This document shows positions 12,109 through 58,358 of a stretch of 64,000 nt of DNA, piece by piece. Every line of letters begins with the position of its first letter. Position 1 is the first letter of the stretch. Position numbers and translations under genes: made by a program. Source of the stretch: Anthoceros angustus. Taxonomy: Eukaryota; Plantae; Anthocerotophyta. The notes under the pieces are model-generated. The model was not told the DNA's origin and ran no database searches. It was given only the letters and a program-made list of their open reading frames with translations. The stretch lies in assembly GCA_010909165.1 (NCBI GenBank), contig MU008195.1, positions 62,001 to 126,000 on the forward strand, written 5' to 3'.

Positions 12109-12176
12109 TGATACCTTCCAAATCCTATGTTTAATGATACCTTCCAAATGCAATGTTTAATGATACCTTCCAAATC
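12109..12176. repeat. Short tandem repeat, about 26-bp unit x about 3
   Basis: TGATACCTTCCAAAT recurs three times at about 26-bp spacing. Confidence 0.8.
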
Positions 12177-12285
12177 CCAAAAGACCGGAAAGAAGGATCC
12201 TTCAGGATACATATATGAGTAGCACCTTAAAAACCTTTGAATCCAAAATCAACTTGAGACATATGATTTAAATATTTTGAATCTT

Positions 12286-22679: not shown

Positions 22680-22775
22680 CTTTGTTTCGGTTGATTCTCG
22701 CCCGAAATCAACAGCAGGCTTTGCAGAGATGAGTTCCAGCAGCACAAAGCTGAAGCTGTGGACATCGCTGGTAAA
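22680..22775 (-). pseudogene. Fragment of a receptor-like kinase C-lobe (subdomain IX)
   Basis: SDVHSFSFVLLELISAKPAVDFGRE. An inverted copy is at about 30055-30130 (+) and a fuller copy at about 37780-37870. Confidence 0.65.
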
Positions 22776-22909
22776 TGTAAAGGTAAAATGTAAAGGACAT
22801 CGCTGGACAAATGTAAAGGTAAAATTCAAACAAGACAAATAATCTTCAAATCAATCAACACTATGAATGAAATTGCGTGAACGAGGGCCAAAACACCAGC
22901 AATTCATCC

Positions 22910-24130
22910 CCACGAAAGAAAACCACTTGACCTGTAGCACGAGGTGCTCTGAAAGCATATAACTTCTCCTTCTTAGTCTTCCATTGCAATGGTGTAAGAA
23001 TCTTCCATCCTGTCAGAAAGCCTGATTCCATCGTTGTATTCTATCGATAAAAAGTCGTCAGCGGACGGTAGGCTACTTGGAACCTAGTGTTGTGTTGCGA
23101 GGTTGAGACCGCTGAGAATCTGTTGTGGAGTGAATGGCGAAGTCCCAGTACTTGTCGCTTCCTTACTGGCGGCGTAGTGAGGGGCGTTACTAATTACGCT
23201 AGCAACGTAGGAAATGAAAACACCCACCCAAATTTCTATTTCATTCGTGCTGGCATCGACGATGGCGGAAGCAACGTTCCTGTGAGACCACATATACGAG
23301 CATCGCATTTTGCAGCTAGGGTTGGGCCAATCGGATCCAGGACAACCTGCGTCTCCACTCCAACCTGTGTCTGATCTGCGTCTCCACTGCAACCTGTGTC
23401 TCACCTGCGTCTCCACTCCAACCTGTCTCCACTGCAACCTGTATCTCACCTGCGTCTCCACTCCAACCTGTCTCCACTCCAACCTGTGTCTTACCTGCGT
23501 CTCCACTCCAACCTGTTTCACCATTTGACCCACGAAAGAAAACCACTTGACCTGTAGCACGAGGTGCTCTAAAAGCAGATAACTTCTCCTTCTTAGTCTT
23601 CCATTGCAATGGTGTAAGAATCTTCCATCCTGTCAGAAAGCCTGATTCCATCCTGTCAAGCCTGATTCCATCCTGTCAGAAAGCCAGAAAACCTATCGTC
23701 AGCGGACGGTAGGCTACTTGGAACCTAGTGTTGTGTTGCGAGGTTGAGACCGCTGAGAATCTGTTGTGGAGTGAATGGCGAAGTCCCAGTACTTGTCGCT
23801 TCCTTACTGGCCGCATAGTGAGGGCGTTACTAATTACGCTAGCAACGTAGGAAATGAAAACACCCACCCAAATTTCTATTTCATTCCTGCTGGCATCGAC
23901 GATGGCGGAAGCAACGTTCCTGTGAGACCATATACGAGCATCGCATTTTGCGGCTAGGGTTGGGCCAATCGGATCCAGGACAACCTGCGTCTCCTCCAAC
24001 CTGTGTCTGATCTGCGTCTCCTGGAACCTGTGTCTCACCTGCGTCTCACTCCAACCTGTCTCACTGCAACCTGTATCTCACCTGCGTCTCACTCCAACCT
24101 GTGTCTCACCTGCGTCTCCACTCCAAGCCT
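22910..24130. repeat. About 620-bp direct tandem duplication containing a CCTGCGTCTCCACTCCAACCTGT-type minisatellite
   Basis: CACGAAAGAAAACCACTTGACCTGTAGCACGAGG starts at about 22911 and again at about 23531. The minisatellite is at about 23345-23520 and 23985-24130, with an inverted copy at 29330-29490. Confidence 0.85.
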
Positions 24131-24350
24131 GTCTCACCATTTGTTTCACTGGGACGATCCCCGGAACGAGATCAGGAATCCGCTAGTAGTTCCTCATGAC
24201 GGAATGTCCACCCGGAAGCTCTGAAGGCTCCACGCAATTTCCGCTTCCCACGAAATTCCGCGCCGAAATTCCTAGTCGCTCCCACCACGCTCAAGCTCCT
24301 GCACGCCTGCCCGCCAGATCGTCACCGCTCCCGAGCGAGCAAGGCAGCCA

Positions 24351-26269
24351 CTAACGAAGCCGATCGCCCAGGGAATTGGATTGCTTGACAAGACTATATG
24401 AGAGGTTGCCAACGCGGGCAACGCTTGTCATGGGAGCATGCTCACCTGTGTTCCCGCCGATCGAATCGGGCTTGCACACTGATCTGACCTCAGACAAGCG
24501 TGCTTTCGCACTCGGGGACGTCACGGTAGAAGGTGACCCTCGTCCTTCACAGGCCACAGCGTAGGGAGCGTAGTCAAGAGCGATTCGTGGAGCAAGAGTT
24601 GGTTTACGTTGCTAACATAAACATTGTCCCAACTGCTCCACTCTCCCAGCCGGTACAGTTCCGTCGACACAAGTGACATTATTTTCTCACGTCTGTATCT
24701 CCATGCCTCCGTCTCACACCTCCACCAGAGCCCTCACAAAAGCACTTTCATGAAGACAGACCTCGGCCTTGGGGATCGTGAAAGAAATAATGGACTCATC
24801 TAACATATCACGGAAGTCTGGTAACCAATTGATTACCTCGTCATCTAGCACACTTGGAAGGACTGAGCATTGCGGGTCATCAGGCTTCTCCTGTCCAGGT
24901 GCTTGACAAGCCTCCGACAGCCGGCCAAGATGAAGACCTTAGGTTTGCATGAGAGAAGCGGACTTAAGAGGAGATGCCGCACTATATTTTCATATACATA
25001 CACGGAGTCTCCATGTTCATCCAAGATAAATACTCTACCATCAATGCCCACATCTGCTATCACGAAACACACGAAAGAGTCACATTCTGCCAGAGCTTCT
25101 CCGTAAGAGGATGTGCCCAAATTCCGCATTATGCTCATCAGCTCAGCGGCTTCTATGTTCTGTAACACCTTCACTTCAAACCCGATACTATGTGCTAGAA
25201 GTTCCAGCATCGCCCGGTCTACAGATACCCAGGGTCTCCCTTTCTCCATGCTTATCAGAACAGCCAAGCCCGTCCTTCGAGCTCTCGTGGTTACCTCAGG
25301 TTCCTATTGTCATCAGAGTAGCCGGTGCTCGGACAGCCCAAGTCGAAGGAGGGCAATGATCTTGGAACCCTGGAGGTTGCAAGTTGCCTACGCAGCTCCT
25401 CGTTCTGCACTATCACTTTGCAAACACCCTGCAACAGCATACTCATCATATCCCGAAGCTCTGTACTGAGATCCAGCACCTGGTTTGTTCTGCAGCAGAT
25501 GTCTGTCGCATCTTTCCCAGTCTGCTTCACCTCAGCCCGGAGCTCCTGAATGATCCTCAGCTCGTGAACAAGCTCCTGGTTCATGTCAGACACCTGTACC
25601 TCGATCCTGTCGAACTCTTCCACAGGCTGCTTCACTGCCTCGTCCATCCCGTCCGCTGCCGTGAGCTTGTTCAGCAACTCCTGGACTTCCTTCAGCAGGA
25701 TCTGGTTATCTTCTGTCCCTTCAATATCTTCTCCACCAGGTAACCTTGAGCTGCAACCGAGTCTTGCACAACCACCTGCTTTGCAAGGCATGCCCATGTG
25801 GCTTCTGTGGATGCCAGCTCCTTGAGACAGCGTGTCAAGGTCAAAATCTGGCGAGACAGCTTGAGCCGTTTCCCGACGTGCTTCAGAGAATTCAACCTCC
25901 CAGCAGGCAAGTCTCGGCACTTGGCTGCAGAAAATCCGCTTCTTCCAGGACCGGCCTGACTTCTTGTAGCCATTCGTTCACCTGAATATCACCATTGCCT
26001 GCTCAGCCATGCGCATCAGAATCTGCAAACCGTGAAACCGGACAGCAGCGAACTGTGAACAGCCCCCTGTCAGATCACATTGCGGGAGGCAGTTTTAGAA
26101 TACAAACCTTGTGCTGCCGATACCAGGGTTTGATCCTCAGAACATACACGTTCAACTGCTCACAATACTTCAGGAGGTTGAGAGTGTCTTTGAGTGCGAG
26201 CGCAACCTTATCCAGCAATTTGTTCACTGCCCAGCCCATTCCAGCAGCAACAAATCCCGGGTCGCCCAT
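24351..26269 (-). pseudogene. RPW8-like / coiled-coil / caspase-like gene, copy 1 (several 1-bp frameshifts, possibly sequencing errors)
   Basis: MGDPGFVAAGMGWAVNKLLDKV..., LEEADFL.AKC, DSFVCFVIADVG and KPKVFILAGCRR, colinear with the intact copy at 39202-41089. Confidence 0.8.
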
Positions 26270-26494
26270 TTTGGTCCTTGGAAGACGAGCGCTCTCCCCC
26301 ACCACGCAATAGAAACAGACGCTACCCTGTGCGACACTCGCCTTCCGCAATCACTGCCCCGCGACTACGGCGGAGGCTCGAGCCGCGGACAGCTCGAATG
26401 CAAAAGCCTTAGATACATGACCCTCACCTGAAGCTTCCAGGAAGTGTTCCTGTTGAACGGAGCCAAATCCGAACCAATGGAGGAAATGTTCCTG

Positions 26495-26965
26495 TGTGTG
26501 AACGGGCCAATCTCGAAGCAATGCAGAACAGCCAATGTGCGAAGCAATGCAGGAAGTGTAGAGCCAATCTCCGAAGCAATGCCCAGAATAAATGCATTGG
26601 CTCCGTTCTGCATTGCTTCGGAGATTGGCTCCGTTCACACTTCCTGCATTGCTTCGGACATTGGCCCAGAATAAATGCATTGGCTCCGTTCTGCATTGCT
26701 TCGGAGATTGGCTCCGTTCACACTTCCTGCATTGCTTCGGAGATTGGCTCCGTTCACACTTCCTGCATTGCTTCGGACATTGGCCCAGAATAAATGCATT
26801 GGCTCCGTTCTGCATTGCTTCGGAGATTGGCTCCGTTCACACTTCCTGCATTGCTTCGGACATTGGCTCCGTTCTGCATTGCTTCGGAGATTGGCTCCGT
26901 TCACACTTCCTGCATTGCTTCGCACATTGGCTCCGTTCTGCATTGCTTCGGAGATTGGCTCCGTT
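26495..26965. repeat. Satellite of alternating about 28- and 36-bp units at the palindrome centre
   Basis: CATTGCTTCGGA(G/C)ATTGGCTCCGTT followed by CTG or CACACTTCCTG, with CCCAGAATAAATG interspersed three times. Strand orientation switches at about 26581. Confidence 0.9.
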
Positions 26966-29900
26966 CACACACAGGAACATTTCCTCCATTGGTTCGGATT
27001 TGGCTCCGTTCAACAGGAACACTTCCTGGAAGCTTCAGGTGAGGGTCATGTATCTAAGGCTTTTGCATTCGAGCTGTCCGCGGCTCGAGCCTCCGCCGTA
27101 GTCGCGGGGCAGTGATTGCGGAAGGCGAGTGTCGCACAGGGTAGCGTCTGTTTCTAGTGCGTGGTGGGGGAGAGCGCTCGTCTTCCAAGGACCAAAATGG
27201 GCGACCAGGATTTGTTGCTGCTGGAATGGGCTGGGCAGTGAACAAATTGCTGGATAAGGTTGCGCTCGCACTCAAAGACACTCTCAACCTCCCAGTATTG
27301 TGAGCAGTTGAACGTGTATGTTCTGAGGATCAAACCCTGGTATCGGCAGCACAAGGTTTGTATTCTAAAACTGCCCTCCCGCAATGTGATCTGACAGGGG
27401 CCGTTCACAGTTCGCTGCTGTCCGGTTTCACGGTTTGCAGATTCTGATGCGCATGGCTGAGCAGGCAATGGTGATATTCAGGTGAACGAATGGCTACAAG
27501 AAGTCAGGCCGGTCCTGGAAGAAGCGGATTTTCTGGTAGCCAAGTGCCGAGACTTGCCTGCTGGGAGGTTGAATTCTCTGAAGCACGTCGGGAAACAGCT
27601 CAAGCTGTCTCGCCAGATTTTGACCTTGACACGCCGTCTCAAGGAGCTGGCATCCACAGAAGCCACATGGGCATGCCTTGCAAAGCAGGTGGTTGTGCAA
27701 GACTCGGTTGCAGCTCAAGGTTACCTGGTGGAGAAGATATTGAAGGGGACAGAAGATAACCAGATCCTGCTGAAGGAAGTCCAGGAGTTGCTGAACAAGC
27801 TCACGGCAGCGGACAGGATGGACGAGGCAGTGAAGCAGCCTGTGGAAGAGTTCGACAGGATCGAGGTACAGGTGTCTGACATGAACCAGGAGCTTGTTCA
27901 CGAGCTGAGGATCATTCAGGAGCTCCGGGCTGAGGTGAAGCAGACTGGGAAGATGCGACAGACATCTGCTGCAGAACAAACCAGGTGCTGGATCTCAGTA
28001 CAGAGCTTCGGGATATGATGAGTATGCTGTTGCAGGGTGTTTGCAAAGTGATAGTGCAGAACGAGGAGCTGCGTAGGCAACTTGCAACCTCAGGGTTCCA
28101 AGATCATTGCCCTCCTTCGACTTGGCTGTCCGAGCACCGGCTACTCTGATGACAATAGGAACCTGGTGTAACCACGAGAGCTCGAAGGACAGGCTTGGCT
28201 GTTCTGATAAGCATGGAGAAAGGAGACCCTGGGTATCTGTGACCGGGCGATGCTGGAACTTCTAGCACATAGTATCGGGTTTGAAGTGAAGGTGTTACAG
28301 AACATAGAAGCCGCTGAGCTGATGAGCATAATGCGGAATTTGGGCACATCCTCTTACGGAGAAGCTCTGGCAGAATGTGACTCTTTCGTGTGTTTCGTGA
28401 TAGCAGATGTGGGCATTGATGGTAGAGTATTTATCTTGGATGAACATGGAGACTCCGTGTATGTATATGAAAATATAGTGCGGCATCTCCTCTTAAGTCC
28501 GCTTCTCTCATGCAAACCTAAGGTCTTCATCTTGGCCGGCTGTCGGAGGCTTGTCAAGCACCCGGGACAGGAGAAGCCTGATGACCCGCAATGCTCAGTC
28601 CTTCCAAGTGTGCTAGATGACGAGGTAATCAATTGGTTACCAGACTTCCGTGATATGTTAGATGAGTCCATTATTTCTTTCACGATCCCCAAGGCCGAGG
28701 TCTGTCTTCATGAAAGTGCTTTTGTGAGGGCTCTGGTGGAGGTGTGGAGACGGAGGCATGGAGATACAGACGTGGAGAAAATAATGTCACTTGTGTCGAC
28801 GGAACTGTACCGGCTGGGAGAGTGGAGCAGTTGGGACAATGTTTATGTTAGCAACGTAAAACCAACTCTTGCTCCACGAATCGCTCTTGACTACGCTCCT
28901 ACGCTGTGGCCTGTGAAGGACGAGGGTCACCTTCACCGTGACGTCCCCGAGTGCGAAAGCACGCTTGTCTGAGGTCAGATCAGTGTGCAAGCCCGATTCG
29001 ATCGGCGGGAACACAGGTGAGCATGCTCCCATGACAAGCGTTGCCCGCGTTGGCAACCTCTCATATAGTCTTGTCAAGCAATCCAATTCCCTGGGCGATC
29101 GGCTTCAAGTTAGTGGCTGCCTTGCTCGCTCGGGAGCGGTGACGATTCGGCGGGCAGGCGTGCAGGAGCTTGAGCGTGGGTGGGAGCGACTAGGAATTTC
29201 GGGCGCGGAAATTTCGTGGGAAGCGGAAATTGCGTGGGAGCCTTCAGAGCTTCCGGGTGGACATTCCGTCATGAGTGAACTACTAGCGGATTCCCGATCT
29301 CGTTCCGGGGATCGTCCCAGTGAAACAAATGGTGAGACAGGTTGGAGTGGAACGCAGGTGAGACACAGGTTGGAGTGGAACGCAGGTGAGATACAGGTTG
29401 CAGTGGAGACAGGTTGGAGTGGAGACGCAGGTGAGACAGGTTCCAGTGGAGACGCAGATCAGACAGGTTGGAGTGGAGACGCAGGTTGTCCTGGATCCGA
29501 TTGGCCCAACCCTAGCCGCAAAATGCGATGCTCGTATATGTGGTCTCACAGGAACGTTGCTTCCGCCATCGTCGATGCCAGCAGGAATGAAATAGAAATT
29601 TGGGTGGGTGTTTTCATTTCCTACGTTGCTAGCGTAATTTAGTAACGCCCCTCACTATGCGGCCAGTAAGGAAGCGACAAGTACTGGGACTTCGCCATTC
29701 ACTCCACAACAGATTCTCAGCGGTCTCAACCTCGCAACACAACACTAGGTTCCAAGTAGCCTACCGTCCGCTGACGATAGGTTTCTGGCTTTCTGACAGG
29801 ATGGAATCAGGCTTTCTGACAGGATGGAAGATTCTTACACCATTGCAATGGAAGACTAAGAAGGAGAAGTTATCTGCTTTTAGAGCACCTCGTGCTACAG

Positions 29901-31270
29901 GTCAAGTGGTTTTCTTTCGTGGGGATGAATTGCTGGTGTTTGGCCCTCGTTCACGCAATTTCATTCATAGTGTTGATTGATTTGAAGATTATTTGTCTTG
30001 TTTGAATTTTACCTTTACATTTGTCCGGCGATGTCCTTTACATTTTACCTTTACATTTACCAGCGATGTCCAGCTTTGTGCTGCTGGAACTCATCTCTGC
30101 AAAGCCTGCTTTTGATTTGGAGAATCAGCGAACAAAGCCTGCCAACAACACCGAGCGGTCCTCCGGTGAGCGAGACTCACAGCGAAAAGTAGAAGTTACT
30201 GAACAAAGAAACCTACATAGCTCTTGAAAGCTTACGATTCCGGACACGATAATTTGCATCGGGAATCAAAATAATTCCACTGGACATGTAGACGGAGGTT
30301 GGCGTTTCTCTTTAGGATTGACGAGAGGAATTGGGGGTGGGCAACAGACTTGTGTCCCCAGCATCCTACACTGGAAGATCTCTAGTTCTTGAGACATTCC
30401 AGTGCAAGGCCTTCAAAATGTTAGGCCACAGTAGGCTGGGCGGCATTGCCATGCGATCATCTACATGACTAGGACCATTCCTCACCAAGCTATGCTCCCC
30501 CTCCCTTCTGAAAGCAAAATGCGGAAAGTTCCGGAAGCTTTGCACTTTGCCCCACAACAAACACACAAACTCCAACCCGTCAACCTCAAACACCTCATGT
30601 GGCGACATCGACATAACCGATTAGGCTCTGCACAAGCGGAGTGAAACACTCAATTAAGCGCATTACCAGTTAGTTGAGGTTGCGGTTATGTCACTATCGT
30701 TCAGCGGACCGTTGACATAGCCGACTAAGCGTCAGCGGATGTATATGGATATTCGGACTGTTTCATACATTAAATTGGTGCTCAATATGGACTTCCCTCT
30801 GAGTTTGCGGGAAGTTCAAAGTTTGCCAACCAAAAGTTCCTTCAAAGTTTATCAACTAAAGCCCATTTTGAAGTTTGTCATGAAGCCAATTTTATTTCAA
30901 TGACAAAGGATCTCGACCACTTCTTGAGTTGTGGCTAAACAATCAGACAGTAGACTTGAATATAAAATGCAACAACCCACCATAAGGTGAGATGGCGGAA
31001 TTACTATGAAGACAAGATTGCAATGGCATCTTCATCTCGGAAGGTCGCATGATAAGGAAGCGGTGCACCCTCTTCCCGGATGGCTGGAAATTGTTCACAC
31101 CTCCAGCGGGTACAGACATCGGAAATAGGCAAAAAAGCGCTCGACAAACCATGCATGGTTGGTCAACAACAAGCATGAAAAAGCAGCTACAATCCTTGCT
31201 ACCTTTCGGATATAACCACATAATCTGAGATGCAGGCGATGGATGGCATCGTCACCAACAATAACCTGTT
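26876..31270. repeat. Right arm of the large inverted duplication
   Basis: Mirror of 21561-26581. The distal 1.2 kb carries many 1-3 bp deletions and CAG/CTG to CG-type differences. Confidence 0.92.
27197..29642 (+). pseudogene. RPW8-like / coiled-coil / caspase-like gene, copy 2 (1-2 bp frameshifts; long open C-terminal tail)
   Basis: ATG 27197. ORF pieces 27482-28018, 28250-28972 and 28938-29642 are colinear with copy 3. The tail has ETGWSGDAG repeats and a hydrophobic IEIWVGVFISYVASVI end. Confidence 0.8.
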
Positions 31271-37870: not shown

Positions 37871-39030
37871 ATCGTTGCTAGGAGTCAGCTCGAAGCTGGT
37901 ACAGTATTCCGGATCGATGTAGCCCATGGTGCCTTGGATTGCGACTGTGGAAACATGAGTGGCTTCCTTGCTAGGAGCCAGCTTGATATAGTATTCCGGA
38001 TCGATGTAGCCCATGGTGCCTTGGATTGCGACTGTGGAAACATTAGTGGCTGCCATTAGGAGCCAGCTTGGAGATGCCGAAGTCTGCCACCTTCGCATTC
38101 AGGTCATGGTCGAGCAGAATATTCGAAGACTCGATATCTGGGTGCAAGATGGGAGGGTCGGCAGCAGAATGAAGATAGGCCAGAGCATCGAAAGTCTGAA
38201 GCACTATGAAAAGGCGTTGTCTCGAAGCGAGGGGAGGGAATCCTTCACTTCTCCCTTGGAGATCTATGTTCGTGGAGTGTGTGTCGTTAGGGACAAACTC
38301 GAAGACGAGGAGAGGAATTTTGTTCTCCATGGAACACCCCAGCAGCTTTACCAAGTGTCTGTGATTCACTCCCGGCAGAATCTTGAAATCGAGAAACTGC
38401 TGCTGGTACTCGGGGGAGCCTTCACGCTTGCAAGAGATTCAAATGCACTGCGCAGGCAAGTAAACTGGCACTGGCAGGAATGCTGCCTTTTGGCTTATTT
38501 CCAGACAGATCCACCCATGGGTATTGCTTCCACTCGGGATCACCAACACCAAAATCCCAAGAAATGGGCTAGACAAGTTGTTATGGGACAAGTCCAGGTG
38601 CGTCACATTCCCCAGTCCGGATGGGATGTGGCCATACAGACGGTTCCATGACAGGTGCAACATCTCAAGACTGGGAAACTTGTGATCGACAATGGTATAC
38701 GGTAATGGTGCCCACAATTGGTTCCGGGAAAGGTTCACCCGCTTCAGAGCGGACATCTGGAAGAAAGAAGGCGTGAGATCTGTGAAACAATTTTGGGCTG
38801 CATGCATGCAGGTTTTGCTGATTGGGGACAGCGGGCACGTCCCCGCTGAGATTGTAACTGTTGGTGAGCGAGAGATGGGCGAGGCGTGCAAGGCCCTCCG
38901 AATTGGGGACGCTCCCTCAGAGGAAGTTACCAGAAAGGTCCAGGCTCACGAGTTTGGTCAGATTGCGCACTCCCTCAGGGATGCCTCCAATCAGTGCACT
39001 GTCGCCAATAGAGAAAGCCACCAACTCCCG
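37700..39030 (-). pseudogene. Decayed LRR receptor-like kinase
   Basis: LRRs GGIPEGVRNLTKLVSLDLSGNFL*GSVP (in-frame TGA), LKRVNLSRNQLWAPLP and LHLSWNRLYGHIPSGLGNVTHLDLSHNNLS. Kinase pieces HRHLVKLLGCSME, LAYLHSAADPPILHPDIESSNILLD, DFGISK, duplicated STVAIQGTMGYIDPEY and DVHSFSFVLLELIS. Frameshifts and large deletions. Confidence 0.82.
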
Positions 39031-39201
39031 CATTTGTGTCCAAATCACTTAGGCCAAATCGACACACATTTATCAGAGCGTATTTGTTAACTCGTGATTG
39101 GCTTTCAACCTGGACGCTGTAATGGTTGCCACCGCTTCCCGGCGAGCAATGCAGCCACCAACTTGAAGCCGATCGCCAGGGAATTGGATTGCTTGACCAA
39201 A

Positions 39202-41089
39202 CTATCTGATAGGTTGCCCACGCTTCTTCATTGAAGCATGCTCACCTGTGTTCCCACCGATCAAATCGGACTTCCACACTGGTCTGACCTCAGACAAGCG
39301 TGCTTTCGCACTTGGGGACGTTATGGTAGGAGGTGACTCTCCTCCTTCACAGGCCATAGCATAGGGAGCATAGTCAAGAGCAATTCGAGGAGCATGAGTA
39401 GGTTTTATGTTGCTCAGATAAACATTGTCCCAACTGCTCCACTCTCCCATCCGGTACAGTTCCCTCGACACAAGTGACATTATTTCCTCCACGTCTGTAT
39501 CTCCATGCCTCTGTCTCCACACCTCCACCAAAGCCCTCACGAAAGGACTCCCATGAAGACAGAACTCGGCCTTGGGGATTGTGAAGGAAATAATGGACTC
39601 ATCTGACACATCACGGAAGTCTGGTAACCAAGTGATTACCTCATCATCTAGCACACTTGGAAGGACGGAGCATTGCTGGCCATCAGGCTTCTCCTGTCCC
39701 AGGTACTTGAATAGCCTCCGACAGCCGGCCAACATGAAGACCTTAGGTTTGCATGAGAGAAGCGGACTTAAGAGGAGATGCCGCACTATATCTTCATATA
39801 CATACACGGAGTCTCCATGTTCATCCAAGATAAATACTCTACCATCAATGCCCACATCTGCTATCACGAAACACACGAAAGAGTCACATTCTGCCAGAGC
39901 TTCTCCGTAAGAGGATGTGCCCAAATTCCGCATTATGCTCATCAGGTCAGCAGCTGCTCTGTTCTGTATCACCTTCACTTCAAACCCGATACTATATGCT
40001 AGAGCTTCCAGCATCGCCCGGTCTACAGATACCCAGGGTCTCCCCTTCTCCATGCTTATGAGAACAGCCAAGCCCGTCCTTCGACCCCTCTTTCGACCTC
40101 CCGTGGTTACACTCAGGTTCCTATTGTCATCAGAATAGCTGGTGCTCGGACAGCCCAAGTCGAAGGAGGGCAATGATATTGGAACCCTAGAGGTTGCAAG
40201 CTGCCTAAGCAGCTCCTTGTTCTGCACTATCACTTGGCTAACACCCTGCAACACCATACGCATCATATCCCGATGCTCTGTACTGAGATCCAGCACCTGG
40301 TTTGTTCTGCAGCATATGTCTGTCACAACTTTCCCAGTCTGTTTCACCTCAGCCCGGAGCTCCTGAATGATCCTCAGCTCGTGAACAAGCTCCTGGTTCA
40401 TGTCAGACACCTGTACCTCGATCCTGTCGAACTCTTCCACAAGCTGTTTCACTGCCTCGTCTATCCCGTCCCCTGCCGTGCGCTTGTCCAGCAACTCCCG
40501 GACTTCCTTCACCAGGATCTGGTTGTCTTCTGTCCCCTTCAATATCTTCTCCACCAGGTAACCTTGAGCTGCAATCGAGTCTTGCACAACCACCTGCTTT
40601 GCAAGGGATGCCCATGTGGCTTCTGTGGATGCCAGCTCCTTGAGACGGCGTGTCAAGGTCAAAATCTGGCGAGACAGCTTGAGCCGTTTCCCGACGTGCT
40701 TCAGAGAATTCAACCTCCCAGCGGGCAAGTCTCGGCACTTGGCCACCAGCAAATCCGCTTCTTCCAGGACCAGCCTGACTTCTTGTAGCCATTCGTTCAC
40801 CTCAATATCACCATTGCCTGCTCAGCCATGCCCATCAGAATCTACAAATTGTGAAACCGGACAGCAGCAAACTGTGAATGGCCCCTGTCAGGTTACCTTG
40901 CGGGAGGGCAGATTTAGAAAAGGAACCATGTGCTGCCGATACAAGGGGTTTGATCCTCAGAACATACACATTCAACTGCCCACAATACTTCGGGAGGTTG
41001 AGAGTGTCTTTGAGTGCGAGCGCAACCTTATCCAGCAATTTGTTCACTACCCAGCCTATTCCAGCAGCACCAAACCCCGGATCGCCCAT
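39202..41089 (-). CDS. RPW8-like / coiled-coil / caspase-like (C14 p20+p10) fusion protein, copy 3, intact (602 aa)
   Basis: Exon 1 41089-40897, GT-AG phase-1 intron 40896-40818, exon 2 40817-39202, with no internal stop. RPW8-like AAGIGWVVNKLLDKV...WLQEVRLVLEEADLLVAKC...KRLKLSRQI. Caspase-like GLAVLIS, GFEVKV, DSFVCFVIADVG, KPKVFMLAGCRR and GSPFVRALVEV. Confidence 0.85.
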
Positions 41090-42294: not shown

Positions 42295-42665
42295 GTTGAA
42301 GTCGGAAAGGTTGACGTATTAGTAGATTACTGAAACGTGGACGTAAGGGGACAAGATGCCAACTCGCAAAACAGAAAAGAAAGTAGCAACTACGCCAACA
42401 ACGTAGGAAATGAAGTACACCCACCCAAATCTCAATCCTGCTGGCGTCGACGATGATCGAAGCAACGTTCCTACGAGGCCATACACGAACATCGCCTTCG
42501 CCACTACGGTTAGATCCGAGCAATGCAGCCACCAACTTGAGGCCGATCGCCCAGGGAATTGGATTGCTTGACAACACTCTCCGAAAGGTTGCCAAGGCGG
42601 GCAACGCTTTTCATTGGATTATGCACCCTGCGTTCCCGCCGATCAAATCGGGCTGCTACACTGAT
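42295..42665 (-). pseudogene. 3'-end remnant (copy 4) of the RPW8-caspase-like family
   Basis: GCCGATCGCCCAGGGAATTGGATTGCTTGAC matches 24359 and 39168, and CGTAGGAAATGAA..CACCCACCCAAAT matches 23206 and 23846. Translates ...SVARLGNLSESVVKQSNSLGDR... and RNVASIIVDASRIEIWVG. Confidence 0.7.
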
Positions 42666-43083
42666 ATGAGTTTGTCAACCAGTTCAGAGTGGAATGGAAT
42701 GTTTTTACATCCATCCATGCAAACAGACTGGATTTTCTTTACGTTCATTCAATCCGCTTCTGCTAACTTTTCTGTGAGATGAGGCTTCAAAGCCTTGACA
42801 GTTTTGCCAAAACCTGCACCAATCATACGAAGTCTTATCAAATTGCAAGAAAGAAACAACAACTGTGTGATACAGGTAAATTCCAATTCAATGGTCTGTA
42901 CAAGTATGTTTTTGTTGCTGTTGTCCAGATACAGCACAAAAGCTTAGCGCACAACTACCCAGTAAGAACCATGGCGCAAAACATCCAAGTGACCGAAAAA
43001 TGTTCCTTCTGTGTCTCTCACTGGCTACCAGCTGTTTCACAAGTCCTGATTATCAAAGCCACGAGGGAGGGCCTGGCACATAT

Positions 43084-48450: not shown

Positions 48451-48949
48451 CAAAAAGCAGGACACTTATATGCACTCTTTAGGGCCATTAGATGGACATG
48501 GATTAGATAGCAGGCTACCAGAAGGTAGTCCAGAGCTGTGAGCGGCATGATAAGCCCAAAATCAGTATCGTGGGGAATCTTCTTCTCATCTTCTAGTAAA
48601 AATATGTTAACATGATAACAAAGAGTATATGCAATAGTCTTTATTTTATTGAAGAGAAGTTCAATGTCTAACTAATTTTCAATTTCACTGATTGAGATCT
48701 TGTATAGGGTACACTGAACGAGTTTCCAAAAATAAAAACATCACTTTGACTTATTACAATGGTCCAAAAATAATAACATCACTTTGACTAATTACAATGG
48801 TACAATGCTGAGCCGTTCAGAGTTCCTTTGAAGTCAAACTGCCAAGATCTACTTGCCAGTTTCTATCAATGTTGTCGACATCTACCACCCACTCAAGTAC
48901 TGGTACGATCGCTTTCAATTATATTTGCTGAGCCTAGGCTATATCCAAA

Positions 48950-50070
48950 GTTCAATGTCTTCGTTCCAAACCGAGGGGGACAGTTTCTGATGATGGGGCT
49001 CTATGTTGATGACCTCATCATGGTCTCCAACAACGAGAGGTATTTAGTCGAGTGCAAGTCTAATCTTAGGAAAGAATTCAAGATGACAGATAATGGTGAT
49101 ATGACATATTGCATAGGCATTCAGGTTGTACAAGATCTCTCTCATAATAGAATTACTTTACATCATGGCAACTATGTTTCTAATTTGCTGACAAAGTATA
49201 AGATGGCAAGTTGCAAACCAGCTCATACACCCATGCAAATTGGCTCTAGGCTAAGCAGAATAATGTCACCTAAATCCGATGTAGAAATTGCAGAGATGGA
49301 ACAAGTTCCATACGCTGGAGTCGGTGGTAGCATTCAACATTTAGCTCAGTACACTCGTGTTGATGTCGCATGTCCTATTGGACATGCATCTCAGTTCAAC
49401 ATTTAGCTCAGTACACTCGTGTTGATGTCGCATGTCCTAATGGACATGCATCTCAGTTCTTGTCCACTCTCGGCAAGATGCACTGGGTGGCTGCTAAAAG
49501 AATTCTTTTAAGATATCTACAACGGACAAGAACCTGTGGGATTCTGTACAAAGGAGGTCCTAGTGCTCAAACTAAACTTATTGGCTGGATTGACGCAGAC
49601 TGGGCGGGAGATGCTGACACAAGGAAATCCACCAGTGGTTACGTCTTTATGCTTGCAGGTGGCGCAATGAGTTGGAAGTCGAAGAAACAGACGTCGATTG
49701 CTCTGAGTTCAGCTGAATCTGAATATATAGCTGCTGCTTCTGCAGGGAAGGATGGGCTCTGGCTCGTTCAGCTCCTCCAAGACCTTGGGTACCCACACGA
49801 AGGACCATTGGAACTGATGTGTGACAATCAAGCTACTACAGATACATGAGATATCATGAACGTGCTAAGCACATCGAGTTACGTTATCACTTTCTCCGTG
49901 CCAAAGTGAAATCAGGAGAATTATCCTTGACGTATGTGCCAACAGAAGATCAACTGGCAAACATACTAACCAAACCTTTAGGGAAGATCAAGCACTAAAA
50001 ATTCTGCTCATTGATAGGCCTTGTAGATTTGTAACAGTTTCAAATCATTGCGCTTCAAGAGGTGTGTGTG
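48950..50070 (+). mobile_element. Truncated Ty1/copia retrotransposon (RT C-terminus + RNase H), frameshifted
   Basis: LYVDDLIM, FKMTDNG, DADWAGDADTRKSTSGYVFMLAGGAMSWKSKKQ, CDNQ, AKHIELRYHF and QLANILTKPL. Internal about 62-bp duplication at about 49335-49460. Confidence 0.9.
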
Positions 50071-51793
50071 AAAGTGGTTTAGTTATGAAGCTTAATCTGA
50101 ACAGACACTGACACTGACACCGATTCGATGAACACACACACCTCTTCACGAGATAGGCATCCTCGATGGCTTCTCATAATGCTGATATATAAAAAAAAAC
50201 ATTCTGCAATTTTGTGAGAGTCTTCGCATGTGTGCTCCCCATGACGATTATGCACACCGGGTGTTGATTGGCTTAAGAGGCTCGAGTTTGAACCTTTTAG
50301 ACTCTCGGCTTGGCCAACTCCCAACTCCCAGCTTCCCCTCTCTCACCTTCCCTCCAACCACCTCATCCGTAAGAACCCCAAATTGAGATACCTTCATCTC
50401 ACTCGGTCCCCTGTTTCATCCGTCCCTCCCCTCAAGACCAGACTCCGTTTTTACAATGAGGAGTTTCGTATCAATCATGCTTTTGGTTTGCCAACACTCC
50501 TACAATACCTCAGTCCTCCTCTCTCCTTCAAACTCCATACATTCATTGGTTAATTGCGTGTTAGCTCGCATCACCTCCGGATCGAGACGAACCGTTGCCC
50601 GCGCCTCCTCATTTGCAACCTCTGCTCCCTTGACCCATAATGTGAAATGCACTTCCTATTCTATTGTCCCACTTATACTGACATTTGGGCTCGATACGCT
50701 CTTCTTTTTTAGTGTGCTGGTTTTCCCTTCCGTGGGTTTTTCCTCTTTCCATATCCCGTAGCTCTCCGGCCTTTGTCTTTCTGAACTTCTTCATCTTCGA
50801 CATACCTTGTTGGACTACTTATAGCTTATGCCTCTTTCTTCATCTCGTATAACTTTAACCTCTTTTTATCTCAAACAATTATTATATCTCTATTTCGCAC
50901 GGACGCATGTGCACTATGCTTTTTACCTCAACGTGGGTCTCATGATGATCTTCCCACCCTTAGCGAACATAGGAGGTAGTGCAAGGCATTTTGCGATGTC
51001 AAAAATTGTTTCGTTCTGGCAAGATTCCGAAAAACGTTCTCCCCTCCCCGCACAGCGCACACCGCTTGGCAGCGGGCATGGCACGGTCAGCGAAAATATC
51101 GCGCGGTTATCGATACCGACGCGTCCAGAGTGGCGCGCGGCAATTCGCACGTGCGGATTATCGATGTCTTGCTTCCGAGATGGAAGGTCACGAGGGCGTC
51201 TTGGAAAGTTGGAGGGTGAGAGCCAGGGGAGCGAAACGACGCGGAGCTCTACGAGTCTACGAATCTACAGACAGTATGTATGTACATATGTACATACATC
51301 GTGAAACTTGACAGAAGGAAGGAGGAAATGGGGGATGGTTTGTCGTGGAGTGACGCAGGCAGTGCGTGTACATATATGTACCCTAATCAGCATTCTGAGG
51401 GCGTTTACGGCCCAGCCCGCTTTGTGAGTGACCGTGAAGGGTGTGGTTACGGGTAGGATCTCGGTCTGTTGGATTGGTCCATGGTCCAATCGAGGATGGG
51501 GTTACAGCACCGGGTGTGAGTGAGATCGGACGCTTCAGTCAGAGGAGGCGGGCCGCCACTAGATTCGAGTTCAAGGTTTCTGTCGTCGCCCTGTCCGACC
51601 GGGGGGGACAGGTAGTCCGCGCCCTTCCCAACCGCACTGCACTGCACTGCCTGTGGCGGAGATGGGACTCACGGGTGAGGGTGCAGTCGAACCGCCTGTT
51701 CCCTTGTGTTGGATTGTTTTCCCAGTCCCGGCTGCAGATGGGTCAGAGGGACAGATTCTTGTGTGTAGATAGATCGTGAAGCTTTGGGAGGTC

Positions 51794-54700
51794 ATGGCGG
51801 AGGGCAGGTCCCGGAGTGTTTCGGCATCGCCGGGCTCGCAGGATCTGGATGGGGACATGGAGATTGCCTTGAGAAGGCTGCTGGTGGAGCTGGACAGCAA
51901 CACGCTCAGGTCGCTCACCCACAGAGAGCTCAGAGATCGGATGTGGGGGGCGCCGGATCCCAGCAACAGAGTGGCCTCGGGGCTGAGGCTGAGGGTGATG
52001 AGAGGCATAGGTGGAAGTGAGTCGCTCGTCAAGGTCACTCTGCTTCGCCTGGAGATGACTGCAGTCGAGGTTGCAGAGCTGTGTCAGGCACTCAAACCTA
52101 ACAGGGTGATCGAACGCCTGGCTGTGAGCAAGATCCCGGAGTTCGGCTTCCTCCAAGGATGTGAGCAAGTGGCAGAGATGCTGACCGAGAACCGTTCCCT
52201 CAGGGAGTTGGAGCTGAGAGGAACAGGTATGGATTCCCAGGGATTTCAAAGGATCGCCAGCGCTCTGCGGCAGCGGCATGCTTCACTGGATTGGTTGAAT
52301 GTGAGTGACAATGAAGAGCTGGGTGATGGAGGAGCAGGGATCATGGCCGAGGCTCTGCAGGACGTGGCTCTCAAGTCCCTGCACATGTCCAGAACTGGGA
52401 TGACACGGAGTGGAGTGACCGTCCTTGCCGCTGCCTTGTCCAGGAATTCGTGTATGGAAGAGTTGAATCTGTCAAACAACGGCTTGGGTAGTTCAGGAGT
52501 GACGGCCTTGTTAGAAGCTTTCAGGCCTAGGGGGGTCCGACCGAGATCAGCGGATGCAAGCACAGGGGGCAGCAGCACCAAGAGCTGCTGTGTGAAGAAG
52601 CTGCACGTTGCTACGTGGGAGTCTGTGAGAGGATGTGGTCAGGCTGTGGCAGACGTGCTGCAGGGTACAAGCTTGCTCACCGTGCTCAACCTTGCCGGCT
52701 TTGATCTTTCCCGAAGGGAGTGGATCCAAGTCTTCCAGTCGCTCAAGAACAACTCCACTCTTCAGACACTCATCCTGAAAGGGTGCAGCACAGTTGGAGG
52801 TGACAGTGTCTACTACTCTCTCATGGCCCTGCTGGAGAACAACACATGCCTGAGGAAGATCGAGTTGGAAGGCACCGACCTGCATTCCTCTGGCAAGGCT
52901 GAGGCCGTCAGAGAAAAGCTGCGAATGAATGGACAAGCGTATGTGGCCGTGCTGAAAGAGCTGGATCACGAGAAGCCCAAGTCCGCTCGCATTTTCCTCT
53001 GCGGCTACCCTTATGCAGGCAAGCTTCTCTCCCTTCCTTCCTCCAACATGTGCACTGGAACTCCTGAGACTCTTGTTCCTGTGTGTGTTGAAAATTCCTT
53101 TCTGCTGTACCAGGCAAGACAGCCTTGAGAACGTCAATGAAGCGGGCCGAAAGGAGGCTGGCGCTAACAGCTGCTCTGCACAGCAAGTTCCTGGCAGACA
53201 TGTGTGTCACCTTCCAGGAGCTTCTCACCCATCAGCTCCACTCTTGCAGAAGATGGTTCGACGAGAACGAGATAGCACAGCGGACCAGGGGCATAGAGAT
53301 AGAGGTCCTGAAGGACGACGCGGATGACCTGCGGGTAACTGTGTGGGATCTTGCTGGACAGGAGGAGTTCCACTCGTTGCAGGACTGCATGTTCCCGGAT
53401 GTCCACAGCGCCTGCGTATTCATCTTCGTCTTCAGCGCGGTGCATCGCAAGACGGGGCAGGTGAAGGAGAGCACGGCGCTGAGGAAGGAGAGCACGGCGC
53501 TGAGGCAGGAGCTGCAATACTGGCTCAAGTTCATCGCCTCCACCTCCAGAAGATCGTCTGCAAAGGAAACTCCCAAGGTCATCGTAGTGATCACCCACCG
53601 GGACAAGGCTCCCGAACTGCCTCTGGGGAACTGCATGACCGTCATCAAGCAGCTGGGGAATGACTTCAAGGGCTTCGTCGATGTGGATACCCTCATCCAC
53701 AGCGTGGACGCCACGGCGTACCAGGACGCCGAACCCGTCCTGAAGCGTGCCTTCCTGAAACTCCGGGAGCTGGTCACGGACAAGCAGGTTCCCAAGGCCT
53801 GCGACCAGTTGCGGCTCCTGGTGCAAGACTGGATCTCGGAGCACCCGAACCGGCCTACCATGTCCTCGAACGACTTCTTCTCCCTGTGCAAGCAGATCAA
53901 GAGCCTGAAGGACATGCCGGATCTGCCTCCGGACACCATGGTCACCCGCCGCAAAGCCGTTGCATCCTACCTCCACAACGCCGGCGAGATCATTTACTTC
54001 GAGGAGCTGGACTTCGTGGTCGTGAACCCGCACTGGTTCTGCCACGGCATCCTCGGGCAGCTCATCAAGATCGGCACCTCCAGCCGCCCCGCCAACCCCT
54101 CCGACGCCGGCTTTATGACCAGAGAGCAGCTGCACCGGCTTCTGGTGCAGAGCTTCCCCAGCTCCACCCGCAGGCCCTCCTCGTACTGCTTCCAGGGCTG
54201 CCAGCCCGCAAATCCGCTGGTGGAAGTCCAGGACCTCATCAAGCTCATGCTCAAGATCGAACTATGCTACGAAATCGAGCCGGGAAACCCCGACGCCGGC
54301 TTCTTCATCCCCGCCATCCTCGACGACGCCGACAACGCACCCGCTGCCGCCAGAGGCGAAAGACAGCTCCACTGGCCTGACGCTGGCGCCGCCTCCTCCT
54401 CCTCCTCCTTCCTCGGCCGCCGGCTCGAATGCGACGAACGCCACCGCACCTTCCTCACTCCAGGCTTCTTCCCCAGGCTCCAGGTCTGCGCCGCTTCGGT
54501 TTCCGCCATCTCCTCCCTTCCTTCTCCTCGTTCTTGGATGCATTTCTTCTTGCACGAGGTGCCTGGACTCACCGTGCTCCTCCTTCTCCAGGTGATTCTT
54601 CGAAAGCAATACCTAAGCAGGAAATGGAGCGGGGCCTACTCCATCCAGCGCAACCTCATCACGGTCTCCCACGCCGGGATCGACATCCTGGTGGAGCACA

Positions 54701-55893
54701 GCGGCAGCATCGGCTACTTCGTGGACGTCCTGGTGCGCTCGAAGCCGCCCGTCTCGCAGGAGGAGACGCTGCGATTCGTGCAGGAGAATGTGGTGAACGT
54801 GATACGCGAATTCTGCGCCTCGCACATGGGGTGCCAGGGAGTGAACCTGGTGGAAGCGGCGATCCGGTCCGAGTGCGTGAGCGGGCTGACTGTGTGCCGC
54901 CATCGCCAGGCCGCGCGAGTGGAGACGCTCAAGGAGCGGCTGCAGCGGTCGCAGCAGACGGGGTTCCAGCACAGCTGGTCGGTGGACGTGGCGGGCCACC
55001 TCAGCGCCAACATGGAGCCGGTGGTGGACCTGCTGGGGCCGGTGGACGCCAAGGACGCGCTGCTGCACCGGCCGCTGCGGGCCCTGCAGAGCGTGGCGGC
55101 CGCGCTGGCGCCCGCCGCGGCGGATGATTCGCCGGAGCCGGCGATTCTGTTGCGCCGGGTCCTGACCAAGCTCGACTCCATCGGGCGAAAGGTGGAAACC
55201 CTGGACTCCTTCATGGCCGCGCTGCAGGCCATGCAGTCCGACATGCTGCGCGAGCTGGTGCCGCGGCTGGACGATATCCTGGGTTTCGCCGTGGAGGCGA
55301 AACAGCGCGACTTTCCCCGCCTCCTCTTCCTCACCGAGCCCACCGAGAGCTTCCGGCGGAAGCTTATCGCCAAGCTGGTGCCCGGGCGGCACCAGCGGGT
55401 GACGCTCAACTTCATGTGCGAGCACCGGGAATGCCCTCACGTGGTGCCCGGGGCACCGGGCGTGTCGGTCACGGTCCGCGACCAGCTGGCGCGTGACGTG
55501 GAGCGGTTTTTGCGGCCTACCTTGAAGCTGCTGTCGCTCTTGGTGCGCGTGGCAGCCCACGTCGGGGCGGGGATCGGGAACGCAATACCGGACTTCTCCA
55601 ATCTGCCGGAGGCGTTGGGGCTGACGCTGGGTGGGTTGGTGGTGGAGGAGGTGGTCCCCGACGTGGGGGGTGACGACGGCACGGACCCCACGTCGACTCT
55701 GGCCGAGAGTAACACATTGCTGACATTGCTCAAGGGCCAGGACATAGCAGAGAAGTTCATGCTGCACCAGGTGCGGTATAAGAGGAGCGAGAACAGGGAG
55801 GCACACATTGCATGGATCTGCAGCCAGCATAGGGACGAGGGGCAGAAAGACCAGACCCTGGATTATCTTGCTCCCACCTTCCTCACTATGTAA
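51794..55893 (+). CDS. TORNADO1-like LRR-Roc-COR (ROCO) protein, about 1300 aa
   Basis: RNI-type LRRs, spliced P-loop GYPYAG|KT, RTRGIEI, VWDLAGQEEFHSLQDCMFP, YWLKFIAS, PHWFC and PGFFPRLQ|V. Introns 53019-53113 (GC-AG) and probably 54484-54591. Start codon and orthology to TRN1 are uncertain. Confidence 0.85.
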
Positions 55894-55967: not shown

Positions 55968-58358
55968 TCACAAATTGGGGTACATTTTCTGGGGAAGCTC
56001 GAAATCCTCCGGGTCGTACCGTGCTCGGCTTTGTCCAATCTGAGTGAAGCCCCGGACAACATTGTGGTTAGAGAAGAATACTGGAAAAGGGAGCGGTGTT
56101 GCTGCCCAGAAGGTGACATCGGGTGAAATGGCATTACCTTGCTTAAGTAAGCGTGGTCGCAAGAGATTTGCTCATCCACGGATGTCAGCTTCTTGGCTAA
56201 GCGAATAACCCTGCCAAAACATTTCCTTTCGAGTAACAACAATTGCCGGAAGTGGGCAGAGACAAAAAGAAAGTACGGGGGAGAGCTCACTGGTGAATCT
56301 CTACGTCGAGTCGTTCTGTCATGCCCTGCGTGTTGTATTGTTCGGGGTCTTCCAGGAAGCTGACCATTCCGTCTTTTTGATTGATGGTGGCAAAGATGTC
56401 TCCGTCTTGTATCTGCCATGGATGAGGAAGACTTTTACATTATCAAGTACATGAAATGCTTGAGACACCATGTCAGTTTGGGTTTGAGGTTAAGAATGAC
56501 CATTCTCAGAACATGTAGCTCAGCTTCCCTTGGGCCTTCCAGCTGCACAGTGTCCGCAATGTCTTGGAGTGACAAGGTCAAGTACGTCTGCGTCAGGCGG
56601 TGGATGTTCCGCTTGTAGATGGATGATACTACTTGCTTTGCCAGACCCAAGTTGTTGTCCTGAAAGAATATTGAGGTCAGCAAAAGGTTGACGCACAGAA
56701 TTTTATCACGGGAAATAGCTGTGAGCCTTGCAAGAAAGTTTAGGAATGAGATGAACCTTTTTGAAAGCATCCTCGTGGTTGGAGACAGAGCGTGTGATAT
56801 CTGCAATGTTCCGGCTGGTGTAAAGGTTCGCCAAGTCGACGTACTCCTGCAACCAGCAAGAATGGATGTGGTTATAGCTGAGTCCAGTACGAGTTGCAGC
56901 TTCCCATTAAGAAGATGCCTTACCTGAGCATAAGATCTTAGGCTCCTCTGGACAACTGATGGTGTGTATTTAGGAAAGGGCGGGAGCTGCAAACCAATTC
57001 GGAAGGTTATTCATGAAAAGCGGACCTGTTGCTTCCAGCACACAAGAAACTCCAACAGCAGATGTTTAGAATGCTGTACCTGCCCATTTTGGATGAGGCA
57101 AACGAGCACAAACTTCTTGAAAGCTGCAATTGTGATTGCGTTCAGGCTTACTGCAGGAGCTGTTATTGCCTGAGTGGCAGTCAAGGAAAAGGAACAGGTC
57201 AGAGAACTACGCTAGAACTGAAATAGCGTTCGCCTTGAAAGACCCCATGTGATGACACTTTAAGCCCACTCTAGAAGGATAGGGTAGTACATGCTGTAAG
57301 AATTCCAATGCCTTCCCAAACCGCTTCAAGCCAATGTAGATCATTCCACTGCAGCAACAAAAACTTGGTCAGAAACGCTAGCAGGAAAATGGCCAACTCG
57401 AGCAGACATGCGTTTGGCCAAAACAAACCTCCCAAGACAGACAAGAGGTCAGTATAGCTAGTTCACCAGAGCAACGTACCCATAGTAGCAGTACAAAAGA
57501 AAATCACGGAGCAAAAGCCCCGTCTTTTTCTGGTCAATTTCAAAGATGTCATCCTCCAAAAGAGCAAGGCCCGCCTTGTAGCATTTCGAACTTATACAGA
57601 CAAGCAGAAACTCGGCATGAAGAGGAGTCAAGAACTCAGACGACGGCTGCAACTTGTGGACGGCTGTTCTCAAAGGCAGGATTGCTCGAGCCGGCTCATG
57701 GAACTGCAGGGCAAGGTCCTTCAATTTCCTGCACAAGCTGTTGACTGCACAGCAGAGAGTCAAGGCTCCAGAACAACCTGCACAAGGCCCCTGACAGCAA
57801 TCCCAAAACGTCAACCACAAGAAGCAGAGAGATGTGCCATTACACTTGTCAGGAGCCAACCGTATCTGCTCTGCACTGCACACGTTAATAAACCCCTCAG
57901 TGCTGTTCAAAAATGCTTCTGCTTGCTCCCTCGACAGACTCGACGCTGGCTGTGCTTCTCTGACCCACGCAACAAATGCCCAAATCAGGTCAGGGGCACC
58001 ATACTACCCAACACCCGAACATTTCGAGCTTGCTGTCACCTCCCTTCAAACAACAACACCGAGCTTTCCACTTCCATCCCTACCGTCTCAGGTGGGAAAA
58101 ATGCATTCAGCTACGAGCTAGCACAGGAGTTAAACACTGAACCAAAGTTTTGAGCTGCCTTGCAGATCCGTACAGGATGTAGAGGTATCCGAGGGAGTGC
58201 TTGGCCGGGTCCAACTGGTGCACGGCGCCGGCGAGGCGAGCAGCATGCAGTCGCAGTACCTCCTCGCTCTGCTTCAGCAAGCCTTGCAGATGCGTGATGT
58301 CATCGCCGCTTCCAGACAGCCCCTGCACATGCGCAACCAGGGTCTCCAGAGAATCCAT
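55968..58358 (-). CDS. CSN3: COP9 signalosome subunit 3, multi-exon
   Basis: [16 protein letters not shown]...[57 protein letters not shown] (PCI domain) and the ARYDPEDF C-terminus. Confidence 0.94.

Follow-up and report, generated by a model that had tools for sequence, protein, structure and literature searches.

A hornwort gene that joins a predicted CC-type helical N-terminus to a caspase-type, most likely non-catalytic domain

Structure and expression of the gene

We analyzed a 64,000-nucleotide (nt) stretch of the genome of the hornwort Anthoceros angustus (GenBank assembly GCA_010909165.1, contig MU008195.1, positions 62,001 to 126,000 of the forward strand), here called the window, in whose coordinates all of its features are given. 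The gene that concerns us lies on the minus strand, as do all of its parts, and runs from its ATG at 41089 to its stop codon at 39202-39204 (39202-41089), a span over which RNA reads are found. Its two exons form a reading frame of 602 amino acids (aa) without interruption; an initial annotation, made from the sequence alone, had proposed this spliced open reading frame (ORF), and both the ORF and all of the peptide strings quoted from it are present. Exon 1 (40897-41089) encodes aa 1-64 plus 1 nt, begins M-G-D-P-G-F-G-A-A-G-I-G-W, and contains helices 1-2 of a predicted N-terminal bundle; it is followed by a 79-nt intron with GT..AG ends (40818-40896) and by exon 2 (39202-40817), which encodes aa 65-602 and the stop.

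From N- to C-terminus the product can be divided into five parts. A putative helical domain of the coiled-coil (CC) type, delimited by low-confidence predicted helices and by language-model features, occupies aa 1-130 (40621-41089, including the intron). Then come a long, probably helical or coiled-coil linker (aa 131-290; 40141-40620), assigned from a single-sequence model and sub-threshold Pfam matches to coiled coils, and an unstructured Asp- and Arg-rich linker, S-Y-S-D-D-N ... G-R-K-R-G-R-R (aa 291-312; 40075-40140), which fills the interval between the helical part and the start of the Pfam domain. The caspase-like (Peptidase_C14) domain itself spans aa 313-519 (39454-40074), and a tail of aa 520-602 (39205-39453), with no Pfam match past C14, contains no recognizable domain. 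As the initial annotation had stated, a Pfam scan of the 602-aa product finds neither NB-ARC nor LRR, placing it outside the CC-type and RPW8-type classes (CNL, RNL) of NLRs (receptors that combine nucleotide binding with leucine-rich repeats); the same scan finds no kinase domain.

The exon junction (40816 to 40896, 79 nt skipped, CT..AC on the plus strand) is carried by contigs of three RNA-type runs, X1 from the same organism as the gene and X7 and X9 from a relative about 93% identical to it, and was not found in the contigs of X2, a DNA run of the same organism. RNA depth in X1 extends over the gene and drops to nothing upstream of about 41225, some 100 nt 5' of the ATG, where DNA depth goes on. 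Because the junction is present in RNA-type runs and absent from the DNA run, and because X1 depth ends 5' of the ATG, we conclude that the gene is transcribed and spliced as modelled, across the very intron that the initial annotation had drawn. The fusion of the two halves is independent of this splice, since a single exon encodes everything from helices 3-4 of the N-terminal domain through the helical linker to the caspase-like domain. A second joint, at 40819-40929, occurs in an RNA-run contig of the same organism; it skips 109 nt with non-canonical ends and may come from the transcript of a paralogue or from alternative or aberrant splicing. Further odd joints in the relative's runs (40689 to 40757 and 40689 to 41025) suggest that several paralogues are present there.

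A caspase-type C-terminal domain

The C-terminal domain had been aligned by eye with animal caspases, and this assignment holds at the level of both profile and predicted fold. Residues 313-519 score 34.9 bits with PF00656 (Peptidase_C14), whose gathering score is 21.4 (expectation value [E] 1.7e-8), over profile positions 2-212 of 233, and a phmmer search pairs them with the large subunit of an ancestral caspase-6. A profile made from the focal domain and its plant-type, bryophyte-only relatives and no other sequences (A3) finds complete chains of caspase-6, -8, -7, and -3 in the PDB at E about 1e-32, and all 60 PDB matches among those listed are animal caspases. An AlphaFold2 (AF2) model of the domain, computed with a bryophyte-only alignment, reached a predicted local distance difference test score (pLDDT) of 74 and a predicted template modelling score (pTM) of 0.74. 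The model has the alpha-beta sandwich of the caspase/hemoglobinase fold, and Foldseek matches it to caspase-3, -7, -8, and -6 with probability 1.00 and template modelling (TM) scores of about 0.6-0.7; its best 50 PDB and best 30 Swiss-Prot matches are animal caspases throughout, with the C. elegans “putative inactive caspase B” (Q9TZP5) at rank 11. No metacaspase appears among the matches listed (60 PDB profile matches, best 50 PDB and 30 Swiss-Prot Foldseek matches), although lower ranks may hold some, and among these matches neither sequence nor structure brings a metacaspase or orthocaspase (C14B) closer than the caspases. The caspase resemblance is far beyond chance, and profile and modelled fold place the domain in clan CD with the caspases, not with the metacaspases.

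Like animal caspases (MEROPS C14A; caspase-3, -6, -7, and -8), the focal family has a contiguous p20-linker-p10 domain and shares the motifs R-x-G-x-x-x-D, F-V-C-x-hydrophobic, K-P-K-hydrophobic-F, and G-S/T-x-F-hydrophobic-x-A-L. The region that resembles the inter-subunit linker is a loop predicted to be disordered (aa 433-472; 39595-39714; model residues 134-170 at pLDDT <50) with Asp sites in V-L-D-D, F-R-D, and V-S-D. Unlike animal caspases, the protein has a plant host and a prodomain that is a putative plant CC-type helical domain instead of a CARD, DED, or PYD.

An active site that has lost its histidine

The active site is where the focal copy departs most visibly from animal caspases. 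The catalytic A/S-H-G motif is replaced by A-D-V-G (39850-39861), and every alignment, whether from HMMER or MAFFT, places Asp or Val at the position of the catalytic His. A-G-C-R-R stands in place of Q/N-A-C-R-G (39715-39729), retaining the catalytic Cys (Cys430; codon 39721-39723) in a column that is nearly invariant across the family. The first arginine of the S1 pocket, in the invariant column of R-x-G-x-x-x-D, is kept, and the S-x-R segment with the second S1 arginine is deleted, leaving the protein without the pair. These degenerate motifs, A-D-V-G included, are common to both local paralogous copies of the gene (described below).

Sequence divergence of the domain as a whole is likewise high: its Pfam C14 score is 35 bits versus 73-153 in its relatives, and its terminal branch in a maximum-likelihood tree is 2.23 long versus a median of 0.95. 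Most relatives have an intact His-Cys dyad in the alignment. Because the His is lost, the S-x-R loop deleted, and evolution fast, we consider the focal domain most likely to be a pseudo-protease. Two relatives, P0001 and P0006, have Tyr at the His position, and an ancient loss shared with them was considered and rejected, as neither groups with the focal sequence in the tree; the losses look independent, amounting to more than one event.

The N-terminal region

We compared the N-terminal half with family clusters through protein-language-model features (Atlas). The best matches of exon 1 (64 aa) are clusters of Rx_N (PF18052), at 0.94 with 178-183 shared features, making up 53 of the best 100; by the calibration of the method, values in this range arise rarely by chance and usually reflect the same family. 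RPW8 clusters rank 57 for this exon. For aa 66-300, which do not overlap exon 1, the nearest neighbors are plant MLKL_N, RPW8, and MCAfunc clusters at 0.72-0.75, with RPW8 at ranks 2-3 (0.72-0.73), although even 0.75 lies within the range of shuffled sequences and is a lead, no more. From these features of exon 1 and of aa 66-300 we read the N-terminus as belonging to the CC class, and we think it probable that it is a CC four-helix bundle of the NLR type.

The initial annotation had named this region an RPW8-like domain, an identity that does not stand as worded: PF05659 matches none of the exon pieces, Rx_N is the best feature match (0.94), and the RPW8/MLKL_N likeness is weaker (0.75). The N-terminus is best called a member of the broad CC/RPW8/MLKL_N class, not RPW8 specifically. 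The Pfam scans behind this comparison used separate exon pieces (exon 1, and several segments from exon 2) with an E limit of 10, the domain being split by the intron, and the exon-2 pieces returned sub-threshold coiled-coil noise only. A single-sequence model of exon 2 is helical throughout, with one helix of 56 residues, at a pLDDT of 34.

Between the gene and the transcripts of its relative, aa 1-150 differ by 16 synonymous and 17 mostly conservative non-synonymous changes, a ratio of non-synonymous to synonymous rates (dN/dS) of roughly 0.3 when pooled over paralogues, which suggests purifying selection on this region. CC executors carry an essential motif at their very N-terminus, and in bryophyte CC domains death activity requires the MAEPL motif (PMC11218826). 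The focal protein begins M-G-D-P and enters a Gly-rich hydrophobic helix from residue 2; the letters recall MAEPL, a likeness that we take as a lead only.

A bryophyte caspase family with receptor-type architectures

An exhaustive HMMER search of 1.84 billion cluster representatives with exon 2 returned 18 matches, every one of them to the caspase domain. Named members of this family include Marchantia polymorpha, M. paleacea, and transcripts of the hornwort Nothoceros aenigmatus, together with a few animal caspases, and in the maximum-likelihood tree the focal domain falls within the plant-type group, apart from the animal sequences, with support of 94/91. Proteins from M. polymorpha, M. paleacea, and a hornwort already stand in databases under the automatic name “Caspase family p20 domain-containing protein,” among them the hydrolase-caspase protein PTQ31690.1 / Mp6g00900-type of M. 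polymorpha and KAG6554914.1 of M. paleacea. Word-indexed searches with exon 2 and with the N-terminal 235 aa gave nothing useful, the same search with the family alignment gave at least two animal caspase-8 matches and nothing useful, and a metagenome scan with the caspase alignment gave no confirmed relatives.

The relatives combine the caspase domain with other partners. The Marchantia proteins are built hydrolase-hydrolase-caspase, with alpha/beta-hydrolase domains ahead of the caspase. In P0005, P0008, and the hornwort sequence P0034, the segment before the caspase is homologous to part of an LRR-Roc-COR (Roco) gene that Pfam identifies within the window itself, about 11 kb from the focal gene (51776-55893, plus strand); the homologous part follows COR-A (54586-54978). 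Because their pre-caspase segments match the Roc-COR gene, we interpret these three as COR-caspase fusions. The final ~320 aa of the window's Roco gene have no Pfam match, and a caspase exon behind it was looked for and not found.

An ORF and domain scan of contigs from other organisms revealed a third arrangement. In three independent contig sets, an ORF encoding NB-ARC-LRR(-ARM) lies downstream of the caspase ORF on the same strand (L004:1855-5564 and 7538-12643; L002:591-6739; L007:744-5841), in most cases separated from it by a hydrolase-like ORF of 236-260 aa. In L004 a consensus donor (CAG|GTAAGT at 2636), just past the caspase domain, and an acceptor at 2958 would link the caspase and NB-ARC ORFs in frame. 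These arrays in L002, L004, and L007 are probably caspase-(hydrolase)-NLR fusion genes, of which we found no description. Given the COR and hydrolase fusions and the NB-ARC-LRR neighbors, the caspase family is, as far as predicted domain order can tell, embedded in immune-receptor-type architectures.

The focal gene is thus like the other bryophyte caspase-domain proteins in belonging to one family fused to immune-type modules, and unlike them in that their caspase follows a hydrolase or COR domain and mostly keeps the His-Cys pair, and in that none has a CC plus coiled-coil N-terminus: the alignments of the 18 HMMER-matched relatives cover the caspase domain only, and no homologue of the focal N-terminus was found adjoining the relatives' caspase ORFs. 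One further sequence, P0016 (389 aa), combines a strong caspase domain (Pfam E 1e-44) with a ubiquitin-like domain C-terminal to it, and groups with the animal sequences in the tree.

Paralogous copies in the window

Two paralogous copies of the gene, each with 91.7% nt identity to it, form part of the arms of a 9.7-kb palindrome (21561-31270). In copy A (24323-26330, minus strand) the frame is broken by many 1-nt deletions; in copy B (27136-29141, plus strand), on the other arm, it is broken at mostly different positions. Over 578 codons the two copies show only 6 substitutions between them, whereas their private 1-nt deletions number 17, most of them in short homopolymers. Because substitutions are few and private homopolymer deletions many, the comparison suggests that part of the frameshifts are assembly errors, as from unpolished long reads or a fold-back, and not decay. 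Speaking against pure assembly error, a DNA-run contig reproduces three of the copy A indels (near 40881, 40906, and 40945).

Discussion

Reviews and a 2023 paper confine caspases proper to animals and allow plants only metacaspases (PMC5756287; PMC10896300). A land-plant gene with a domain from a family that matches animal caspases along the entire p20-p10 unit challenges this textbook statement. The initial annotation had repeated it in saying that land plants lack QACRG-type caspases; the literature does say so, and the Marchantia and hornwort proteins automatically named as caspase p20 and already deposited call for it to be qualified. The bryophyte caspase family is in this sense silently known. 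Our literature search, with subscription journals outside its reach, found no paper on bryophyte caspase-type domains, on CC/RPW8-caspase proteins, or on NB-ARC-Peptidase_C14 plant proteins, in keeping with the earlier suggestion that the architecture is new; the CC-coiled-coil-pseudocaspase combination appears to be undescribed. What is new in the fusion, to judge from the databases and papers searched, is the meeting of a caspase fold with a domain that is probably of the death-executing CC type of plant NLRs, without NB-ARC or LRR. It raises the question of whether a CC executor in plants can be under the control of a caspase-fold module, and whether caspase-type signaling is older than animals or was recruited independently outside the animal lineage. 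The observation that prompted this study is itself confirmed, and its interpretation is supported in part.

Several known systems offer partial parallels. The C-terminal half is reminiscent of c-FLIP and other pseudo-caspases, in which a caspase fold likewise bears a degenerate active site, and by this analogy regulation through the dimer interface is plausible; c-FLIP, unlike the focal domain, has no Cys, whereas the focal domain keeps the Cys and loses the His, and the N-terminal domains differ. In the order of its parts (an N-terminal helical domain of executor type, long connecting helices, and an enzyme fold that is probably catalytically dead) the protein resembles the MLKLs of animals and plants. 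The initial annotation had put forward this general design, which is borne out, and the loss of the His fits the analogy. The likeness is one of design and not of family membership, as the focal C-terminus is a Peptidase_C14 domain with no kinase and the MLKL_N profile is unmatched. With the CC domains of CC-NLRs (Rx_N; MADA- and MAEPL-type N-termini; PMC11218826) the N-terminus shares its best feature match, that of exon 1, and a helix order and helix lengths that fit a four-helix bundle in the low-confidence single-sequence model; in contrast to them, neither NB-ARC nor LRR follows, and no exon piece has an Rx_N Pfam match. The likeness to RPW8/CC-R domains (PF05659; RPW8 proteins, ADR1/NRG1) extends to the broad helical-bundle class, without a profile match on the exon pieces, and for exon 1 the features clearly favor Rx_N.

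With about even confidence, we favor the reading that this is an expressed gene of bryophyte type in which a CC-type bundle of ~130 aa and ~160 aa of long helices are joined to a pseudo-caspase module that restrains the CC executor. By analogy with c-FLIP bound to caspase-8, and with the MLKL pseudokinase and its four-helix bundle, the pseudo-caspase would serve as a regulated docking or dimerization module that keeps the CC domain inactive, and it might couple that domain to the catalytically intact receptors of the family (COR-caspase and hydrolase-caspase proteins, and caspase ORFs upstream of NB-ARC-LRR). The trigger would be either recruitment, by induced proximity, or proteolysis within the Asp-rich linkers (S-Y-S-D-D, V-L-D-D, F-R-D, V-S-D), after which the freed CC domains would oligomerize at the membrane and bring about immune cell death. 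That a caspase-fold module gates a membrane executor is something we infer purely by analogy, and cleavage of the Asp/Arg-rich linker at aa 291-312 is no more than an idea.

A number of results weigh against this reading. On the N-terminal side, no exon piece matches RPW8 (PF05659), Rx_N, MLKL_N, or any other Pfam profile; PDB searches by phmmer with exon 1 and with aa 66-160 gave nothing relevant; the single-sequence AlphaFold model of exon 2, at its pLDDT of 34, is unusable as a fold; and the feature match of aa 66-300, as said above, does not leave the range of shuffled sequences. Neither HMMER on the 1.84 billion representatives, nor two word-indexed searches, nor a scan of metagenome contigs found a homologue of the N-terminal and coiled-coil region. 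The architecture has been seen in this organism and its close relative only. On the C-terminal side, the catalytic Cys is still present, and it is from sequence that we infer the loss of activity. Finally, dN/dS against the local paralogues is 0.64 and the copies look broken, which would fit a decaying lineage-specific family.

The retained Cys leads to the possibility that the protein is an active protease of initiator type, in which Cys430 works with a substitute general base and the CC/coiled-coil prodomain, in the manner of a CARD or DED, recruits the enzyme to CC-NLRs or other oligomeric platforms. The first S1 arginine and the overall fold are also intact, Asp-rich loops lie at the positions of caspase auto-processing, and most relatives have the His-Cys dyad. 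The Asp or Val found at the His position in every alignment, the deleted loop of the second S1 arginine, a Pfam score of 35 bits where relatives reach 73-153, and a very long tree branch nevertheless make activity quite improbable in our view. The same degenerate active site would suit a non-lytic regulator or decoy, whose pseudo-caspase, like c-FLIP, forms heterodimers with active members of the family and so inhibits or tunes them, its N-terminal helices acting as a scaffold coiled coil; an N-terminus without a profile-level match to any executor family and a long coiled-coil-like region are consistent with such a role. Set against it are the exon 1 match to Rx_N clusters, at 0.94 above the chance calibration of Atlas, and the Gly-rich hydrophobic helix that starts from residue 2, in the place of the essential motif of CC executors (PMC11218826), and we regard it as rather unlikely.

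The broken copies point in another direction, to a young lineage-specific chimera that is drifting toward a pseudogene in a duplication-rich accessory block and has no selected function. The gene adjoins the 9.7-kb palindrome with its two frame-broken copies, LRR debris, and a retroelement fragment, the dN/dS of 0.64 against the copies is high enough to suit drift, and the N-terminal half is without homologues. Yet the 602-aa ORF is intact and its intron correctly spliced, homologous spliced transcripts occur in a second organism, conservative and synonymous changes are in excess over aa 1-150, and the frameshifts of the copies may partly be assembly error, with private 1-nt deletions in short homopolymers; we hold mere drift to be a poor prospect.

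Returning to the restrained CC executor, we can extend it to a bryophyte pathway of caspase-based immune death, in which receptor-linked caspase-like proteases (with NB-ARC-LRR, Roc-COR, or hydrolase modules) would activate the CC-pseudocaspase executor by heterodimerization or by cleavage of its Asp linkers, leading to membrane permeabilization. This larger scheme we think unlikely as it stands. If true, it would parallel the logic of the animal inflammasome and apoptosome and provide a plant counterpart of caspase to gasdermin, or of RIPK3 to MLKL. The more ordinary reading would still be useful, as the plant immune repertoire would gain a domain class from a lineage-specific pseudo-caspase adaptor.

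Other features of the window

Directly downstream of the gene lie plant-specific LRR fragments (LRR_1/LRR_8; 38439-39050, minus strand), which are probably debris of a receptor kinase or receptor protein, or a separate gene. On its other side is a 155-nt fragment (42517-42669, plus strand) that is 81% identical to the region of the gene's 3' end. The retroelement fragment referred to above encodes a copia-type reverse transcriptase (48828-49406, plus strand). Beyond the Roco gene, the minus strand holds a PCI-domain fragment (56435-56992), a single-exon N-myristoyltransferase ORF (60435-61769), and a fragment with a beta-mannosidase-like Ig domain (62581-63324).

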